From Auanema rhodensis (lineage: Eukaryota; Animalia; Nematoda), in the NCBI GenBank assembly GCA_964057225.1, contig OZ059894.1, positions 10,230,001 through 10,294,000 of the forward strand: a stretch of 64,000 nucleotides of DNA, in the 5' to 3' direction. Position 1 is the stretch's first letter; every line of letters starts with the position of its first letter. Under the pieces are notes generated by a model. That model saw only the letters and a list, made by a program, of their open reading frames with translations. It was not told the DNA's origin and did not search any database. A program made the position numbers and the translations under genes. Shown one piece after another: positions 10,573 through 53,900 of the stretch.

Positions 10573-12158
10573 TATTTGAAAAGGTCATATATATGCTACA
10601 AGATGATGAAGTTTCTTTGTGAAATACAAGAGAGTTACATAAAGAAGAAAAATTTTATAATTACCAGCTTTGGATCATCGTTTATCCTTTTTGATGTAAA
10701 TGAAATGAGACAATATGTGAATGAAAAAGAAAAAAAAATTGAAATTGAGAAGTAAAATTTCGTTGAAAAAGACTTTCGGAATGTGTTCTTCATTTCCTTT
10801 AAATTAAAATTATTCTATCAGTCAAATGACAAAAACCTAAGTTTAAACATTAAAATCATATAGATTATATAGAAAAAAGAAGTTCAAAATGCACAAAGTA
10901 TAAAATAGAAAATTAAAATGAAGGATAAGCTGGTGAAAAAGTTTGAGAAATTTTAGAATTTGATGTAACTACTTATCATACTAATGAACTTTTATAAATC
11001 TTTCTAGTTCTAGTTGAATACGTTAAAGCATAGCAAGATTACGAATTATTCAATTATTTATATTTGTAAAATTAATTTTTTGTATTTTTTCTCTGAAAAA
11101 TAAGAAAATAAATCTTTTTTTTTGTATGTAATGAGAAGAGGTTGTAAGCTCAACTCTCACCCAACCCCCTCTCTGTCTATAAACAGATCTCCCTCTCTCT
11201 CTCTCTCTCTCTCTCTATGTCTCTGTATTCGCTTCTGAGATCTATACATCTCCTTGTTGCTTTTTCTTACAAGGGAAACAACAGCATGCTACTCTTGTTA
11301 CTATTTCTTCCTAATATTGGACGGATTGATGTAACATGGGAGGAAATGAACAGAAGGAGATGCTGCAGAGATATGAATAGAACTACTAAGCACAAGTAGG
11401 GCCTCTCTTAGAGAACTTTTAAAACAAAGAAAAAATTGTCCGATAAATCATCTATTGAGGATTTGGAAGAAGATAAGCACCCTCAATAGCATGCAATCAC
11501 CTACTGGGCTGTTTAAAAACAAAACTAAAAATCGATGATATACAGAAATTTTTGATAAATGAAGGGAAATAGAAGATGAGCCAGCTAGCTAGTTAGCTGA
11601 ATTCAGCATAGTTTCTTGATCATTCAGAATGAAAAATAAATAAATTTCAATCAAATGAAGGTTCATTTCTTAAAGTTATGCATATTGTTTGCACAAATTA
11701 GAACATGCTGAGCATGTGACTCACGTGGGTTGCGTGAAAAAGCATCAGACATTGTTTTTTTTTTTTTTTTGAAAGAAAAACTGACATTGAGCGGTTGCAT
11801 TGAAGTCTGCTACTACTACTCCTGCTGCTGCTGCTACTGCTACTGCTTGATATGAAGCAAAAGATGCAAATGAAATACAAATACAAGTAATAATTCTTGC
11901 TTTCTTATCCATTTTTTTGTTGGAAAATAAGGAAAATATGACATTTATCTGATAAATGCGTAGGCAGAAGCGTGATGAAGGGCTGAAGATGGATGTCATA
12001 TGTGGCCGACACCAAATTCGGAAATGGTATTCGGCAAGTAAAGAGTGCTTATATAAATAGACAAAAACGGATAGCATTACATGAGTGATTAGCCACATCC
12101 TTAGGAGCCGTACTTGGCTCTCGTATGCCGTTTGTATATCTTCTCTCCCTCTATTGGG

Positions 12159-12229
<71 letters not shown>

Positions 12230-14816
12230 TTTTATCTAGATTGTTCACTCTCGATTGAGCTATGTCTAGATCTCATTCAATTCCTCTCTCTCATTCATTC
12301 TCTTACTCTCTTCATATTGTCTTAGGATATTTTGTTCTATTATGGTGTTTCATACATTTGAGATTAAGTGGCAAAGATAAAAAAAATAAATAAAAAAACA
12401 TGAACTCTGAATAACGAAGAGCAACATTGATGAGAGAAAATGGTTTGGAAGCTAAATGCTTTTTCCTTTATTTTAAAACATTTTTCTGTGAAATTGGAAT
12501 GTTCTTGAGAATCGTGAGTGAAGAATGACTAGTTGATACTCGACCTAACCATCAAAAGTGCCATTGTTTTCATTTTTTTTGCTCAAAAAATTAATTTGTT
12601 TTTACTAAAAACGTAAGAAAAAACTATTCAGCTTTGAGAGTAGAATAAACTTTTCACAATAAAAAAAACTTTTAAGAACTCAGTGTTCACTTCACCTGCG
12701 GCTGTTGACGAGAAGAAAAGACAATTCAAAAAAGTTGTGGGGATGACCACCTTTGTGTGGCGTCCAAATTCTTTTTTAAACTGAACAGAAAATCATTGTG
12801 AACTTGTGGCAGAACGATTCAGACGTTAAAATGAGATGTTGTGATGAGGGGGAGCTAGCATAAGAGGGAGGAGGCAGGGTGGCAGGAACGTCTTCTGAAT
12901 AGTTCGAAGAGGCGAAGACGTTAGGAGGCAGACTACGTGATGACGAGTCTATGTAATAGACCCTTGGGAGGGTTTCTGACGAATGGAAAGATAGATACAA
13001 GAATGAAAGCAAAGAAATGAAAAGAAAAGAAAAAAAGTTTCAGAGGGTCCGCAAGAAGCCGAAGGAGAAGCTGCTGTTATCTGTTGAGCTATGCCTAACT
13101 GCTGACATGTGAAAATGGTTGTGTGATCTAACATCTTAGTACTCTTTCTATCTCACTTTTCTCATTGTCCTCTCGTTTCTTCATCAATCCCTCAGCCCCT
13201 TCCATCTCCCAATACTTTGATCAAAAGCTTAATATGTTCAACACTTTTTTTTAATTTTTGCGAGAAAAGAAAGAGAAGAAACCAAAAAAAAAATATGATG
13301 AGCTTTAAGGCTTTTGAGGAAAATTTCGAAAGCATAATAAGATTTGTTAATTTCTTTCAAATCTTTTGTTTGGCAAAAAAAAATAAAAGAAATAAACCTG
13401 CAAAAGGTAAAATTATACGTTTTTGTGTTTAAAATTTAAATTTTTTGCCCAAAAAAAGGATTGAAAAGTAAAATTGTATATGATAGATTGATCTTTCGAT
13501 TGTATAAAAGATGATCAGAGAGCATTGAGTCTTTTCTAAGGTAAATATCATCTTAAGTACTTCATACATTCCTTGTCTTTCTGCTATTTTCAAAACTGAG
13601 AAACGGATGAAATGCTTTAATAGATCAGAAAAGATAGAGAGATACAATATAGTGAATGATGATGTCATTCAGATGATAAGATCAGCAAAAAAAATGTTTT
13701 CTGAGCTTAATGAACAGGACAACTTAAAGAAAGAAGCTGAAATCTTAATGATTCAAGCTGTAAGCTTGATTTTTCCTTTGATCTTAGGTATTGACTTTAA
13801 GATTTAAAAACAAAATTTTACGGATGGAAAACAGTGAATCACAAACTGGAAAAGTCTAATTGAGAAGCATGCTATCAGATGATAATTATACTGAGGATGA
13901 GACTAATGCTAATGATGATAATCCAAAACAGATGGATGTCTGTGTTAAGCTTGTTGGCGGCAAATCAGAAAAATGGACACTGTCAAGCATATGTTGAAAG
14001 TTGAAGAGGACAGAGGACACAACGTTGAAGAGTTTGCCAACGATTGGTCAAGCTCGATGAAGTAGTCGAACATCGATGTATGAGAGAGAGAGAGAAAGAG
14101 AGAGAGACCAGAACGGAAAAAACTTTCTTCGTAATAACACACGAATAACACGAGAAAGAGGGAGTAGTGAACAAGCGAGAAATCAAGCGAACTACCAAAT
14201 GACAGAAATGAATATTGTATTACGTTACCACCCGAGGGATATAGATTGAGCGGCTCTATTCTTGAAATCTGCTCAAGATCAGAATAAACAGAGAGCATCA
14301 GAGTCATACACTCACTATCTCACATCACTCTCCTCTTTCAGTTCTCACCGTCTGTCATTCTCTCTCATTATTCTCTGTATATCTCTATCTCTGTTGTACG
14401 TAAATTACCTTTCTCGTTCAATATATCTCTCTCTATCTCTTATATAAGAAGTCTTTCACTCCCTATTTCTTCTAGTTTCTTTCTACACACATTGAAAGAT
14501 CATATACTGTTTGGGAGACTGTGAAAATAAGCTTTTCGATGATATCTTTGAGACAAACCAATCGAAAAATCTATCTCATCATACTCGATCTTTCGTTTTC
14601 CGTTTTTGTATAGTTTTGGAAATAATTTTTGTAATTTTCTTGGCTTTTTTCTCTCAAAAAGTAGTTAAAGAGATACAGTTTTTTTGATAAAAATGATAAT
14701 TATTACTAAAAGATAATGAGAAGAAAACTAGCGGAGAAGTAAAAGAGAATAGAAGATCATGGTGGATGTACCTTGTCAAGCCTTTACGGGAGAGAGGGAG
14801 GAAGAGAGAAAAAGAA

Positions 14817-31500: not shown

Positions 31501-34126
31501 TCAAGCAACACCTAAACTTTTTTTCATCTCCTAGTTGGATTGGTGTCATAGAGAGAAAGAAATAAAGAGAGAGAGAGGGAGAAAGAGAGATAGAGAGAGA
31601 TCGCATCTTCTGAACACAAGCAGCAACCTGTATTGACATTTTAACTTCTATTCTTCAAGTTTCTCAAAGAACTTCAATTTCTTCCGCTATAAGTCAGCCG
31701 CTACCCCCATCTCTCCCTCTCTCTCTCTCTCTATCTTTCTTACTTACTTCTTTTTTCTCACCCACCTTACTTAGCGCATGTTCTGAAAACTAATGCCATT
31801 TTCATTCTGTAGGAACTAGAACCATCTTCTTAATCCAATTTCGATTTTCAAAAATAATTTCAATCGCACAGAACATTTTCTAACTCGACCATCTGTCCTG
31901 TCTGATTATCGCAATTTATGGTCTTCTTCTTCTTCTTCTTCTTCTATGTCTTATGATACAATCTACATCTTCTATATAGTTTCTAGACCAAGATGATGAA
32001 AACCATTTATATCAATCAATATTCATGATTTGCCATATAAAGTATTCGTTCCAATTTCTTGTTGTCTTATCCACTCTCATCACGTCATCAATATCTACCC
32101 AGCAATCTGTCCAATGCCTATGAACGAACCATTATAGCTGAATATCTCTCCGTATATCATTACCTAGTTTGTATTCAGAAATCTTAAATTTTTGTAGTTT
32201 TTCAGTATTTTATACTCTTTAAAAGGCTTCACAATACATTCTATTATTGATTTATAGATTTCAATCAAATTATCTGTATTATATCTCAATCATATCGATT
32301 CTATTTGCTTTTTTTGGTCAAACATTTCCGACTTAAAGGAGGAGAAGTAGAATGACGAAGAGGAAGTCAATTGTCTTCTCGCTTCACCCCTACGATGATG
32401 TTCTTCTATCTGTTCGTTGTATGCCATTCTCTTCTCCTATTTCCCAAGCTAAACATCAGTTCTCTAGATGTGAAATGTCTTGTTTCATCTAACATTCAAT
32501 ATCCGTAACAATTCACTCAATTGACTTGTTTTCTTGTAGTTAAAAAGGCACCACGAAAGCTATTTTCTCACTCCCTATATGTCTAAGAAGAGAAGTCATT
32601 TTGCCAGCTATCTGCAACTGTTTGATTTTCGTATTTGAATTTTTCTGTCAATAATCGAAAATCTGCGAATGCATCGAGAATCAGTTCCTTTCCTTTTCAT
32701 TTCTCTCACTAATATACATATAGTGAATATCAAATCTATGTAGAAAAAAACATGTTTTTCGTTATAATTGAGTAAATCCTTATAATATAGTTAAGCAGAC
32801 ATCTTCTGGCTTCTTTCTTTTTCCAAGCATTTTATCATTAAATCATTACATATCTTAAATTAATCTTCACCACATTGCTTTTTACTTAAGGAATAACTTT
32901 GGAATATCTTCTTCTATTTTTCATTTTTCCTCTCAAACATCTCTCCTCACATCGTTTTGTCCTCAAATTATTTACCTGAAGCATCATCAGAGTGCTTTGA
33001 TCCATGAATTTACTTCTCATCTAATTTACCAAATAATATACTCAATACTCCTCTTTCCAGTAAAATTTCTAGTTTTTATGTTTTACAAGTCATTTTTCGC
33101 CAAAATCCAAACTCTATTTATAATTTACATATTGTTTTCTTATAAAATACTCAAATGTGAGCCATTTTTCTGGTTTTTTTCACGTTAAATCTTTATTTCC
33201 CTTCTTCATATACGTTAATACGCTATTCTTATATGACGTCATTAACATACAGAATCATTTTCAATTTTTATTTCTACGAAGCGGTTGCATTTTTGTATAT
33301 TTCTTACCAAAATCAATTTTTGTTGTTTTCTTTTTCTTTTTTTTTATAGAAAGATTCATTCATTCTATCTCGATTTCTTCTTTTTCATGATCGTCAACAT
33401 GAACAACTAGATACAAAACTTCTTTTATTTTATTTTCTACAGTTATGTTATAACTTGTATCTTATTAAACTGAAACTATAATACTATATATATAATATAT
33501 ATTATATAAACTTCAAGCTATCATTCATTTTGTATTCTTAATATACAAGATCTGGTTAGAAAAGCAATCGCACAGCACAAGCTAACCGTACCTGTCTCAG
33601 TAACTATAAAACATATATCAGTATATATACATAAACAAACATAAACTTCATAAAAATCATTGTGACTATTGTTGCTCAGTTGTTGTCTATCTTTAACTAT
33701 ATTTCTCACTATAAAGCTTATATATCAAACATAATACTTGCTGAGCTCATACCAATAGCATTTTCTTTTTTCTTTTTTTTTTTGACAAGCATAAGCAATT
33801 TTCAAAATAAAACGACATGACAATGCTGAGGTAAAAACAAAATTTAAACTTATATTTGTTTTATATGAATACATTTTATAAATATATGTATATGTATATG
33901 TTTTATATAGTTAATATGACCTTCGTAAATGACCTAAACTAGATAGTAACTAGTTAACTAGCTTGCAATAGCTCTCATTTCATTTGTGTTTATAAGTAAA
34001 TCTCTATAATAACTAACAATAGTTCCACTTTTCCATATTTATTACATATATATGTTTATAAGAGAATACCAGTAAAAAAAATGATTTAGATTAACACCTT
34101 TGATGGGTGTTTCATTCAATTTCAAT

Positions 34127-36082: not shown

Positions 36083-38467
36083 TTAGAATTCACGGTCAGG
36101 GAAAAGAGCTGGAGCAATCATAGACCAGCCATACAAGGCTAAACAAAGCCAAGAAGAAACAATCTTAACCCAAACAGAAGCCATGTTACTGTTCAAGTGA
36201 CTGAGATCGTTATCAGGTCTGTAAAAGGCTCGATGACTAACAAACTTTATATAAAATAACTCACTTGTACCAACTTGTTAATGTCATCATGACATACAAA
36301 GACGCCAATCCGAACATGAAATGGAAGAAAGAGTATGAATAAGCTACTCCGTCAGCTTCATTATCCCAAGTCTTGGTATTGCCAGTTTCAGCATCATCTG
36401 TAAGATTAAATTGTGATCAAAAACGAGAATTTAAGACGGAATTCTCAACGTGCAACAAAACGGACAGATTTCATGCAACACAAAAGAGTAAAACGAATCC
36501 CCCATTTACAGACTATCTACTAAAGGTGAAACAAATGGGAAACTACGTCATACCCTGGATAATCGCATCTCTGGACCCACTAAGTTGAATGCTTTCATCT
36601 CCTCCGGTAATTTTTCCAAGAGAGGTGTTAGAAGAATTTCTGATTGAAGCGTAAAGCAGACAAGCAAACCACAAGATCAAAGAGATAATAGATTGAGCAG
36701 GTAGAGGTGTACCGTATCCCTGAAAAGAAACAATCAACTCGAAACTTTCAAACAGTATACTTACGTGTTCTCCCTTGTCGTCAACTTTTGAAGTATTCGT
36801 GAACAAGCTGATGAGAGATGGATTACACTCCTTGTCTGGAAAGTACATAGTTTCGAGAGCAATAATTGCAACTAATTTACCTGGGTTGTTGACAAGGGCA
36901 GACCAAGTCAAATAAACAACATACATGCAAATGAAAGAGGACTGAAGAAGTCCAGAACGGGGCATTCTACAATTAAAAAACTGTAAGTAAGTAACTGATA
37001 GAAAGGACAAGTACCTCTCTTGAACAAATGGCATTACGGAAAGTACACTGACTCCAATGCATAAAAGCATATTGAAGGTAATAAAGAACTTTGGAAGTCC
37101 GCATGAGCCACCCTGCAACTCAGTTGATACAATGATAATATTACTATAGAATCTTACAGTAGTATAGATGATGTACATAAAGATTATGGCGATGAAGGAA
37201 CAGACAAAAGCTCCAAAGGAGAAAGACAATAGACCAGCAAAACACCAACGAGACTCAGTTTCTTCGTAACTAAACAATACAAATAAACAAAGGATATGTA
37301 ATGGCTGACCAACCTTTCAACCCATTTTTCAGCCAAACCGTGAGCAAAGTCAACGATTAGGATAAGCTGAATGAGAATGAACATGAAACCACCGAGTAAG
37401 CCAATCCACATCAGAGCTAAAATTCCAAATAAGTTGTGAAAAGTTATGATAATAAGCGGGTTTTAGCACCAAAACTGTGGGAAGGATTTGACACTCTTGG
37501 AAGCATATACAGCAGACTAAGAGTAACACTAATCCCTCTCTACGTTATCGCACCCTAATATTATACGTCAGCCACATATAGTGGAAGCCGTCCCTTGAAG
37601 GTGCCACGTAGAAGATTCGAACCCCGAACTATCAATGACAGACCGGAGTTCTACCCTTACACTATATGGCTGTCGACTTACGTGTTGCTAAATGATCACT
37701 GCTGATGAAGAAGAACGCGATAACCAATCCAATAAGCAACAAATATTTGAAAAACCTAGAAATAATATATTCTTATATCATATATAGAATAGTTAAATAC
37801 CAGAATCCATTTTGCATAGCCGACCGTCCATCTTTAGAAGATTTCACTCCAAGCATCATAACCATTAAAATGAAGAAAAATGAAGCCATTCCAGCACACA
37901 ATCTAAACCAATTTTTTAAAGTTTTTTAACAGAAAGTAATTTTGATAAAGATTCTTATATTTTACCTGTAAACGGCTTGGAATCCAGTAGCTTTTTCGCA
38001 AGTTATACCAGCAATATCACTCAATCCTTTGCAGAACCATTCATGCTGGAAAAGTAAGAATTACAAAACATTATAAAGAAAATAGAAAGATGCAACCAGT
38101 TCATTTTTTTCAAACTCGAAAATGAATTAAGTTACCATTGTGAAAAATGTTGAAAATTCAGAAAAAAATGAAAATAGTGAAGCTATTGCTTCACTGTTAT
38201 AATTCACTCAACACATACCTTCGCCATATATTCCTGAATTCCAGGAGCGAGCATTATACAGGCTACAACAGTACCCAAGAAGAGCATCAAAGCATACATG
38301 ATACGAGTTGTAGTAGAATTTCTTGTTGTGGGACAAGCAGCACAACATAATGAGCATGCTGCACTTCCGAAGCAACATGCTGTCTGAAAAAATATTAAAA
38401 AATTACTTAATTTAAGAAAACTGTAGATTACCGAAGCTCCACAAGGTAGAGCTAGGAGAGCACCCAT
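36083..38467 (-). CDS. SERINC: Serine incorporator (SERINC/TMS1/TDE family)
   Basis: Multi-exon. N-terminus [26 protein letters not shown]...STTTRIMYA; [55 protein letters not shown]; C-terminus [10 protein letters not shown]. Confidence 0.96.
37471..37474 (-). terminator. Oligo-T (TTTT) Pol III terminator right after the ACA box
   Basis: Minus strand ACAGTTTT. Confidence 0.55.
37473..37604 (-). ncRNA. Box H/ACA snoRNA guiding 18S pseudouridylation at positions equivalent to human U1625 (5' hairpin) and U1248 (3' hairpin; SNORA13/snR35-like)
   Basis: In SERINC intron 37417-37681. 3' hairpin: GAGGGAUU/AAUCCUUC and ACUCUU/AAGAGU stems, ACA at 37476-37478, 14 nt from the pocket; guides match AUUUGAC-U-C-AACAC. 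5' hairpin: GCACC/GGUGC base; guides match AUUAU-U-G-CCCUUGAA. The H box is imperfect (AUAACG). Confidence 0.88.
37602..37670 (-). promoter_or_regulatory. Degenerate tRNA(Asp-GTC)-like leader with Pol III A and B boxes upstream of the snoRNA
   Basis: Acceptor-like GCCATAT/ACGTGGC+A; A box TAGTGTAAGGG (37654-37664); CTGTCAT anticodon-loop-like; B box GGTTCGAATCT (37613-37623). Anticodon and T stems are decayed, so this is not a functional tRNA. Confidence 0.75.
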
Positions 38468-49439: not shown

Positions 49440-50964
49440 AAAATAACTAAATTTTTATTGATATATAAGTTTTGCAACATAATCACACTGAACAGAATAC
49501 AATATGTTCGAATATGGATATTGTGTATAAAGTATCTAGCATGTCTAAGTAGAAAATTCTAGCGAGGCTATCTATAGTAAATAGAATCAAAAAACGACGA
49601 CTGCTCAGCCGAGTTCATAACGTTGAATAACAAATAAATATTCTAAAATTTTCAGCTGAACAGTCATGGCTAAAGAAAATAGCATGCAAAGTAGACAAAT
49701 GTAACAAAACTATTAAATATGAAAGGTCACTTTGCACCCTATACATAAAACATCCAAAAATGTAAAAAAAAAGAACAAAAGAAAAGGAATAAATATAGGA
49801 TGCCAGAGGATCCATTTGAAAGAATGAAGGAAATCTGATAGGCTATGAAAAACACTGGTACCTTATGGAAAATGAATTAAACACATAAGAGCGGGAGCAA
49901 CCCTACATGACAGTAACCGGGTATGGGATAGTTAACCATGGTTCTCAAGGTGGAATTCACAGAGTAACTAGCCGTGAGAGGGTTCAGCTTCCCGTTTCAA
50001 CGTAACAAATCTGGCAGAATTATTACTAATTGCTCATAATATGCAGATTATTAAAATGTTACCGGTGAGGAACCGAGTACAAGGCAGATAAAACTAAAAT
50101 AAATGAACAAAAAATGAGAATTATTAAGGCATGATAAAGGATACTTAGAGGTTTGGAAGCGTAGTCGCCCATCGGAGAAGCTTTGAAAAAAGCCCAGAGA
50201 AAAAGAAGAAAATAAATTAAGAAAAGAATAATAAGTTATGGAACTGAATCGCAGCAGAACTCCTTAGAATTCGAATAAGGATCTGTATGGATAAGCCTCA
50301 TTCTGCATCATACTGTACAATATAGCAGCGAAACAGTTAGGAAAGAAAGGGTATTCATAAAAATCTACAGATTGATATATCTACAAAGAGAAGGAAATCT
50401 TCTTAGAAGTCTAGTGAGGTAATTAAACCTGGGATTAATGATTAGAAATGCAAGACAAAACTAGAATATATACTTTTCGGTATGTTTGACAATACCGAAA
50501 AGCTCTCCAAGAAGGCACAGAGAAGAGGCACAACACATATCCCAGATGTATCAAACGAGTAAAAAAAAATAAAAAGGAATAACCAATATCTACATTGTTT
50601 ACAATGTAATATACTGAGTTGGTATTAAAATAAGCTATGCTGTTAAAGGAAAGGGAAGGGGGCGTTAAAAGAAAGAAAAGAAAAGAAAATGATGGTCTAG
50701 ATCGTATCTAGGCTTAAATATAGATAAACGAAACCGGCAAACCAAAAACTGCCTTAAACAACATTCACTATCAAGAGCCATGAACTGTTTTAAACAAAAC
50801 AGGATCAAGAGAGCAGATGTTGTTCCAAAGACTACTTTGAATAAACTCAAGAATTCCTTTAATGCACAAAAAAACATCTAGGCCAGACTTGAAATGGTTG
50901 TAAACCAGGTTGAAGTCTTAAAGAAGAAATTTTACATCAGTATTATTTAAAAACACTAACCCAA
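49440..50964 (-). promoter_or_regulatory. Putative ~1.5-kb ccch-1 3' UTR with AREs, miR-124 sites and stem-loops
   Basis: U-rich on -; first AATAAA seen at 49454-49459. UAUUUAUU at 49633-49640 and 49788-49795; miR-124 matches at 50081-50086, 50125-50131 and 50512-50518. Confidence 0.5.
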
Positions 50965-53900
50965 CTATTTTGCACTTAATTGGGCAAATACTGGTAAACG
51001 ACTTGGGGCTTCTTCAGCACCCCACTTATCATCAACTTTAAAAGCCATCAAGTCCGTCAGAAGAACAGAGATAGGTTCACTGAAATTATAATGATATGAA
51101 AAGGTAAAAAACTGTTGGGAGTTCTTAGTGGTATATCACCCTCGGAGAGATGAGAATACCGTGGTACCAGCCATTAATATCCGCTCACATATGAACGCCT
51201 TCAGCCAAAGCGCTGGAGAGCGCCAACACCTAGTGGGATTGAACCACTAAGATGTGAGCGATGGACTAACGTACTGCCACTACACCATAACAGACATGTT
51301 GGGTAATGAAAATGTTTACCACATATTTTAAAAGAGCATTGTTTTTTTTATTTACTAAACAATAAACATACGTCTGTTGATCATAAGTTGCTTGGAATCG
51401 CTGGGCTTGTCTACGAGATCCTCCTTGTGGTCCCATAAAACCATTAGCAAAGGGTGCAAGACCTAATAATAAACATTTATAAAACATGATATGAGCAGAT
51501 TTTCATGCATACCACATTCATCGTTATCGAGACCCGAAGAAAAGCTTCCATTAGGCGATTCAGAACCGCTATCATTGGAGCTTCCAGAGGAAGACTCACC
51601 AGCACTTCCATAGTTTGGAAGAGAAGCCATGCGGTGAAGGAATGAACTTTGCACTGAATATAGCTCATTTATGAAATATATAATATTCATGTCTTACAGT
51701 TCTGTACACTAGGTGTCATAGAGGAACCTCCAGGTCCACTAGTGCTTTTAGAGCTACCATTAGTAAACATATTCAAGCTTGATTGAGTAGATGTCGGTTG
51801 ATTCATGAGTTCCATTTCACTGAAAAAATAAAATATTTTGAAATAATGAAATTTATAATCCTACTTGTGAATAAAATGGCATCGTGGTCCATATGGACAA
51901 TAACCTGTCTGATGAAAAGATTGGCAAGCTTCTGTTTTATACTTTGGGTGACGTGGAATCTGTCTCTTCTCACATTCCCCATGAGCATACTGACAACTGA
52001 AAAGGAAACATTAAAAAATTTCGTCATACAAGCATCTTTGAAAATAAAAATTAATGCACAGCGGAACTAACCGTTCCCCATAATTACATCGACCATGTTC
52101 CATCCAACTACGGCATAATTCTGTCTTATACAGTTTTGGATTTTTCGGTGCAGGAGTATTACCACTGCTTGCATTACTGCTAACGGACATATTGTTATTT
52201 CCTGAAAAAAAGTATTTTACAAATAATTTTCATATAGAGGGAAATGTTGGAATGACAGTGCGGTCTAAATAATATGTCTTTTCATGTGGCATAATTACTA
52301 GTCAAACTAAATTTGATCGCACACAACTGAACAACTAGTGCATAACGCGGGACGGTGCCGTCTTTCAACTTACGGGTAGCAAAAATCTGTATAATGACAC
52401 AGGCGACAAGAAAAGTGAATTTTCAAGTGAAGAATTTTAGCACATTGAAATGAAAAAATCATTGAGAAATGTCATATGCGTTTGAAACCAAAAGATTCAT
52501 TAATTGGATGAAACCCAATTTCGCAAAATTGCAGAAGTCTGTCGACCAAGCTGACTAAAAATGCAATAGAGGAGCATCTCATTTCCACAAAGCTTAATCG
52601 AATAAACAACGCAACCATCATGACGCTTGCCATATATATATTGAGAAGCATAAATTCTCTAAAGACATGCTAATGTCTCAGCGTTGCGCTAGATTGCTAA
52701 CCAACTAAAGTTTAAGAAAAGTGCATAAGCGAATAAAACAATGAAATGTTTCTTTTGTTCAAAATAGATCAACAAAAGTACATAGAAAGTGGTCGTGGAC
52801 AAAATTTCGACATGAGAAAAAAAATGAAGACCTGAATTACTTGAAATGCAAGGAAACGTGCATTTATTGAAAAATATAGATTAGTTGAATATGAATATCA
52901 AGAGTCATTGATAACTAACCATTTATCGGCATCCCTGGAGCACCAAGAGGATTTCCGTTTTCGGAAGCTGGGGAAACAACACCGCCATACGGACGTCGGC
53001 TGTTTGGAGCCCTTAAAAGGAAAACGATAAAAAAGTTAGCATTACAAGACACGCATTTGTGATAGTCTACAATCACAATAGGCAAGAATCAAATAACAAA
53101 TAGAATACATAAAGGCAAACCTATTAGTCATTTGCTTGAATGGATATCCCGTGACTTGATTCAGTGAATTATTTGAAGGTGAAGACACTGCTGAGAATGG
53201 ATCCAGAAGAGAAGACAAGGCTTCCGTTGGCGTTGACTGATTAGAGTATACAGACTGAAAACAATTATTTTTATTTGTACAGTTTTTCAACCAACAAGAA
53301 AGAAGCCAATTATAAAAGAAACGAAGGAATATGACACCACTAATATATAAACAGGGCAGGCAAAAAGAAAAACAATTTGGAGATCAACGAGGCTTCTCTA
53401 CGACGAATAATCCTCTAAAGAAGTATACGTTGGTTATGACCAAAATATCTGCCATCATATCAAATAACAAGTAGATTAATGAAATCATGGAAATAACCAA
53501 TAGTCTACTTAATAGAATAGAATGAAATGATTATTTTAAAAAAAACAAGCAACTCTCAATCTGATGTCAAAAACTATGACATTATCTAAACAAGAGAAAA
53601 ATAAAAGGACTAATAGTGATTTCTAGCTTAGTTCAAGTCTTTTTATAAAAACGCAGTATTAGTCATAACGAATTCATAAACATAAGAGATGCATGAAGCA
53701 TTTAAAATATAAGGAATGTTGAATTTAATTGGCTAAATATGTTGCATACATATAACCCACAGCTCATTGGAGCTGAAATTGGAATATCAAGAAAAAATAA
53801 GTATTGAAGCTAAGGGCCATTCAGAAACACCTGGTAGTTCAAAGTGTAACAGGGTGATGGAATTCAACTTGTAGTCGGGAGGAGAAGAAAGACCAAAGCT

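Follow-up and report, generated by a model that had tools for sequence, protein, structure and literature searches.

A snoRNA gene in the last coding intron of ccch-1

The locus is a UM2-type H/ACA snoRNA gene of Auanema, a clade V nematode, and it is a real gene that had been unannotated till now. It lies on the minus strand of the window (the whole stretch of DNA analysed, 64,000 nt), within an intron of a tandem CCCH zinc-finger gene, the ortholog of ccch-1/TIS11. The initial annotation had described the unit as a leader with A and B boxes followed by an H/ACA snoRNA, and this is borne out by the boxes, their spacing, the ACA and a run of six Ts. The features of the locus are the following.

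51080-51371, minus strand: host intron of the cassette, 292 nt long and the last within the coding sequence of the ccch-1/TIS11-family gene, placed by RNA splicing and the flanking exons
51224-51296, minus strand: tRNA-like Pol III leader of the UM2 type, 73 nt at tRNA spacing, with a putative 5' end
51277-51287, minus strand: A box
51252-51260, minus strand: leader segment 1, antisense to the 3' strand of hairpin 1 by exact match; their helix (helix 1) is predicted by folding
51243-51252, minus strand: leader segment 2, antisense to the 3' guide of hairpin 2 by exact match; folding does not predict their helix (helix 2)
51229-51251, minus strand: extended T arm of 8 bp, P ~0.9-1.0 in the precursor ensemble
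51235-51245, minus strand: B box and T loop
51181-51223, minus strand: snoRNA hairpin 1, with a 5-bp lower stem, pocket and 7-8-bp upper stem; folded on its own, it has the native structure as its minimum
51182-51190, minus strand: pocket and lower stem on the 3' side of hairpin 1, which leader segment 1 matches exactly
51175-51180, minus strand: H box (ANANNA)
51161-51164, minus strand: hairpin-2 5' guide (4 nt), from rRNA pairing
51130-51160, minus strand: hairpin-2 upper stem-loop, P ~0.97
51121-51129, minus strand: hairpin-2 3' guide (9 nt) for 18S U1290 (yeast numbering), from rRNA pairing
51113-51115, minus strand: ACA box, 14 nt from the pocket top
51106-51111, minus strand: T6 Pol III terminator

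The A, B, H and ACA boxes and the terminator were recognized in the sequence. The H box is at the hinge and the ACA is three bases before the 3' end. The A box and B box are 31 nt apart, and both are 5' of the snoRNA. In the UM2 loci of C. elegans, as described in the available text of Li et al. 2008 (PMC2527325), the two boxes are 33 nt apart, and leader and snoRNA are made as one short-lived transcript whose start lies 9-13 nt before box A; cutting or digestion then removes the leader, and the mature ends lie ~70 nt past the transcript start. The start of the Auanema leader was placed by that distance of 9-13 nt upstream of box A. The Auanema cassette resembles these loci in its internal A and B boxes, its tRNA-like leader of ~70 nt, the snoRNA directly after the leader and the oligo-T end, and it shares an intronic position with the C. 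elegans H/ACA locus CeN55 (PMC2527325). Pol III transcribes as many as 59 snoRNA genes in C. elegans (PMC7277114). Unlike the leaders in that UM2 account, the Auanema leader lacks acceptor and anticodon stems, as neither of these shows any pairing. The features of the sequence, the pairing with the rRNA target, the splicing of the host and the lack of the cassette in orthologous introns are direct observations; we infer Pol III transcription, processing, the RNA ends and all of the folds discussed here.

The snoRNAs of plant dicistronic tRNA-snoRNA genes and of yeast SNR52 belong to the box C/D type. These genes are like the Auanema cassette in that a Pol III promoter element is transcribed before the snoRNA and then removed, which in the plant genes involves cutting by RNase Z (Kruszka 2003, as cited in the available text of PMC2527325). 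In contrast to the plant type, the Auanema leader is not a real tRNA: ARAGORN found no tRNA in it, and the two stems mentioned above are unpaired.

The host gene is well supported by RNA and by comparison with a related species. Intron 51080-51371 is removed by splicing in two RNA runs, at a depth of 90-230. An unspliced RNA contig that crosses both splice sites has a depth of 3-8 (7.8 vs ~230 for spliced RNA); it is host pre-mRNA or DNA and shows no separate leader-snoRNA precursor. Gene models were searched per exon or as unspliced genomic ORFs. When all of the ccch-1 exons were searched one by one, the closest sequences were those of Auanema sp. JU1783 (A. melissensis), at 62-100% identity, and the exons flanking the cassette intron are 62-87% identical to ccch-1 of that species. 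The syntenic DNA of A. melissensis is just 70-82% identical to the window, so that the window belongs to a different species of Auanema. The long ccch-1 3' region (window 49440-50568; 11170-12289 in A. melissensis) is 82% identical, above the 70% of the coding region and introns, and it includes a 94% block at 50499-50567 that holds a hairpin-like inverted repeat. A 44-nt intron (window 50917-50960, minus strand) is spliced from the ccch-1 3' UTR, a few bases past the stop codon.

The cassette in this ccch-1 intron is restricted to this Auanema lineage among the species compared. The orthologous intron of A. melissensis JU1783 is 51 nt long and empty of the cassette, and the cassette is not in the ccch-1 loci of Diploscapter, C. 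elegans or Necator. Since it is absent from these orthologous introns, parsimony suggests that it arrived in this Auanema lineage. No second copy at 80% or greater likeness and no copy from a related species was seen in DNA contigs or in the reads of four runs, and those reads held no variant letters at the cassette. The pattern of B box, guide and ACA gave 21 matches in metagenome contigs, about the chance estimate, with no cassettes among them. Among genomic ORF fragments, one unrelated nematode fragment was all that a search for further Auanema species returned.

The surroundings of the intron have features of their own. A 7-nt T-rich word is found on both flanks of the cassette (~51307-51313 and 51097-51103, minus strand), and the same word terminates the empty A. 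melissensis intron; it is a weak candidate for a target-site duplication in AT-rich DNA. Necator has three related tRNA-headed SINE-like copies in or near ccch-1, at 33415 (plus strand), 17389 (minus) and 38538 (plus). One of the Necator copies is between the last ccch-1 exons, and the SINE-like copies are unrelated to the snoRNA.

The guide target and a second cassette in the window

Hairpin 2 of the snoRNA is a guide for a conserved position in 18S rRNA. It forms 13 Watson-Crick pairs (9+4) with 18S rRNA, 14 nt from the ACA, and the target uridine is position 1290 of yeast-type 18S. The target site is also present in a nematode-like 18S piece. Pseudouridine 1290 is the site of yeast snR83 (PMC5699541). 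The target originally claimed for hairpin 2 is correct. The Auanema guide is like snR83 in its target uridine and in its canonical pocket geometry (PMC5699541). A scan of non-Auanema rRNA gave no convincing target for hairpin 1, and the second snR83 site (1415) is not among the hairpin-1 matches. This rRNA comparison left out 31 eukaryotic rDNA contigs that have vertebrate- or plant-type letters after the motif or that are missing the tested letters, and among which human DNA might be present. Eukaryotic rDNA contigs contaminate many bacterial genome records, and one of them is the nematode-like 18S piece.

Human SNORA4/ACA4 has the same target uridine as the Auanema guide. The cassette snoRNA has no match in Rfam, either at the gathering score or at E values up to 10. 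Unlike snR83 and SNORA4, with whose Rfam covariance models it has no match, it is snR83-like by target alone, and its Pol III leader differs from the yeast or human expression mode. The whole mature RNA folds no better than shuffled sequences (z -0.15). The gene looks functional, since its guide is intact and the DNA contigs showed no duplicate at 80% likeness or above.

Another cassette in the window, built on the same plan, served as a control.

37471-37673, minus strand: second UM2-type H/ACA cassette, in an intron of Serinc, with its A box at 37664

Its 3' hairpin forms 12 Watson-Crick pairs with 18S rRNA, at 14 nt, and targets U1191, the site of snR35 (PMC5699541). The leaders of both cassettes have the same 73-nt spacing. 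The second cassette has an ortholog in A. melissensis (10640-10835 there), and it is not in the Serinc loci of Ancylostoma, C. auriculariae, C. elegans or another rhabditid. In the ortholog the snoRNA is conserved and the leader is heavily diverged, keeping the boxes, T stem and spacing alone.

Leader-snoRNA matches and predicted folding of the precursor

Two segments of the ccch-1 leader are complementary to the snoRNA that follows it. Both matches reported in the initial annotation are exact on the minus strand: 51260-51252 is the reverse complement of 51190-51182 (9 bp), and 51252-51243 is the reverse complement of 51132-51123 (10 bp). The segments had been described as adjacent; they are perfect matches and they overlap at U51252, and their total is 18 nt rather than 19. 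The longer match was said to cover most of the 3' guide; it takes in seven of the nine guide nucleotides, and the rest is three nucleotides of the hairpin-2 upper stem. Helix 1 can be extended to 10 bp with one G-U pair and ends directly before the H box. The two helices cross (order L1 L2 S1 S2, for leader and snoRNA strands), and therefore both together would make a pseudoknot. Leader-snoRNA pairing is not described for C. elegans UM2 in the available text of that report (PMC2527325), and a literature search found no report of snoRNA self-inhibition by a leader, which is weak evidence of novelty.

The matches were also claimed to be unlikely by chance, and this holds per locus. The probability of two matches of at least 9 nt is 4.3e-4 with dinucleotide shuffles, 5.5e-4 with the boxes fixed, 3.8e-4 with the T arm kept, and 5e-5 with foreign leaders (real nematode 73-mers). 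Among 60-300 such loci, 0.02-0.11 double matches are expected. The double match is unusual but, being noticed after the fact, it is not decisive. Some of the complementarity is shared with promoter elements. The last three leader bases of the 10-bp match are the fixed GGU of the B box, and the core hexamer of segment 2 recurs in the A box and pairs with the same snoRNA bases, so the target of the guide is promoter-like by nature. The 18-mer is also the 5' arm of a hairpin within the leader, in which the T arm extends locally to 15 bp by pairing with 51236-51221 and is closed by the T loop (span 51260-51221, -17.6 kcal/mol). Of this hairpin the initial annotation had named the T arm alone.

The precursor was folded as an ensemble at 37 and 20 C from six start sites. 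The proposal had been that the precursor adopts a fold blocking both guides and competing with the T arm of the leader. In the partition function the first helix is predicted (P 0.67-1.0 per pair) and the second is not: its P is ~0 at both temperatures and from every start site used, and a fold made to contain it is 12-13 kcal/mol less stable. The T arm is kept with P ~1, so that no competition with it is predicted. At the predicted minimum the molecule is a rod, where leader bases are paired with three parts of the snoRNA: the 3' strand of hairpin 1, some of the H box and the 5' side of hairpin 2. The 5' guide of hairpin 2 is just 13-27% unpaired. The fold competent for snoRNP assembly is 15 kcal/mol above the minimum in the precursor vs 3 for the mature form. 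Masking is therefore predicted for the naked precursor, by a route other than that first proposed.

These results make the full two-helix model, in which both pockets are blocked and segment 2 mimics rRNA and opens the T arm, extremely unlikely. Both matches are perfect, and as isolated duplexes helix 2 (-13.5) is stronger than the pairing of rRNA with the 3' guide (-9.5). With no loop penalty at all, the pseudoknot comes to -63.4 vs -64.3 for the minimum. However, the helices cross and have one base in common, a realistic pseudoknot penalty would probably raise the fold by several kcal/mol, helix 2 is absent from the ensemble, and the T hairpin is formed long before hairpin 2 is transcribed.

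On another reading the 5' domain has helix 1 as its true basal stem, with a mature RNA starting at ~51261 and the B-box arm kept in a three-way junction. The 10-bp helix ends right before the H box, as basal stems of H/ACA RNAs do. This arrangement is very improbable: no pseudouridylation pocket would remain at 14-16 nt, the 73-nt leader spacing equals that of the control cassette, and mature C. elegans UM2 RNAs have their ends ~70 nt past the start according to the available account (PMC2527325).

Origin of the leader-snoRNA matches

The predicted masking is largely generic and close to the level seen with shuffled leaders. In the shuffled-leader comparison at this locus the exact matches are rare (P ~4e-4), but masking is only marginally above the shuffles (P 0.04-0.10). 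The masking gap is 15.0 vs 10.2+-3.6 with shuffled leaders (P=0.097), the gain from cross-pairing (ddG) is -16.3 vs -9.4+-3.6 (P=0.044), and the number of cross-pairs is 35 vs a mean of 26 (P=0.17).

The second cassette gives a further view of such matches. Its leader has a 9-bp Watson-Crick match to its own snoRNA (shuffle P=0.017; 10 bp with G-U), and the 9-bp helix is poorly populated, with P at most 0.14. Conservation in orthologs had been suggested as a check on the pairing, and here it went against it: the 9-bp and 10-bp matches are missing in A. melissensis, with no compensatory change. Cognate leader and snoRNA pair over 9-10 bp in both cassettes of the window, and swapped pairs reach 5-7 bp. 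This contrast, at two loci, is only a lead for a general pattern. No result shows selection on leader-snoRNA pairing.

The locus is probably an ordinary UM2-type gene in which the complementarity is incidental, in a drifting leader. TFIIIC would bind at the two internal boxes (A and B), and Pol III would transcribe a ~190-nt leader-snoRNA precursor ending at T6, as the C. elegans UM2 loci suggest. A cut near tRNA position 73, or a 5' exonuclease, may then take off the leader, giving a mature H/ACA RNA of ~113 nt that pairs with 18S rRNA at U1290 and would direct its pseudouridylation. The leader itself may be a fast-drifting promoter remnant in which nothing but the boxes and T arm is kept. 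An incidental match is favoured because the 18-mer is the 5' arm of the T hairpin of the leader, because the rRNA target resembles A-box and T-stem words (the same hexamer is in both, matching the snoRNA), and because the snoRNA is so weakly folded that in silico it is invaded by any leader. During transcription in cells, the local hairpin would form first, and loading of H/ACA proteins and quick removal of the leader probably make helix 1 irrelevant. Against an incidental origin, the double match is rare both per locus and genome-wide, both cassettes in the window have a cognate match of at least 9 bp with non-cognate pairs below this, and helix 1, which abuts the H box, is strongly predicted.

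The matches may instead be mutational scars without function, left when part of the snoRNA or T arm was copied inverted into the leader by template switching or quasi-palindrome correction, either during replication or at the move of the cassette into the intron. The cassette resembles a lineage-specific insertion, the acceptor and anticodon stems are lost exactly where the matches lie, and cognate matches are found in both cassettes of the species, all of which fits such an origin. It is unlikely nonetheless, as two switches with templates 60 and 110 nt away must land side by side, and the four runs without variant letters offer no intermediate alleles.

A selected checkpoint based on helix 1 is another reading. 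The leader would displace the lower stem of hairpin 1, the rod would spread to the flank of the H box and to the 5' guide of hairpin 2, and helix 2 would be uninvolved; the precursor would become active only on degradation of the leader or when protein binding outpaces the pairing. Several predictions agree with this, including a helix 1 with P ~1 at 20 and 37 C, the occluded 5' guide and the 15 vs 3 kcal/mol cost of the assembly-competent fold. Prefix folding also agrees: for a transcript ending at 51220 the predicted structure is the local hairpin, which holds the 18-mer, and the 18-mer switches to helix 1 once 51190-51182 is made and hairpin 1 is complete. The delay before helix 1 would leave a window for protein loading. 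However, roughly 5-10% of shuffled leaders mask as strongly, no ortholog of the cassette was found in the loci compared that might show conservation, and no need for a checkpoint is obvious, given that UM2 precursors are short-lived in the available account (PMC2527325). The leader, once cleaved, could also remain bound and inhibit the product. On balance it is quite unlikely that a checkpoint of this kind was selected. It is just as unlikely that the tRNA-like Pol III leaders of this lineage in general were selected to pair with their own snoRNA, through helix 1 and the rod that it nucleates at this locus and through the 9-10-bp match in the second cassette, making the precursor assembly-incompetent until leader removal. 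Such a leader would be a checkpoint in RNA comparable to a pro-peptide, of which the literature search found none for snoRNAs.

The favoured reading, an ordinary gene with incidental complementarity, adds to what is known of nematode snoRNAs. It provides an Auanema guide for the conserved 18S pseudouridine 1290 that was overlooked by Rfam, and UM2 cassettes differ in their host intron even inside Rhabditina. If the pairing proved to be selected, the UM2 leader would gain a role at the RNA level besides that of promoter, and there would be a new coupling of snoRNA processing to activation.
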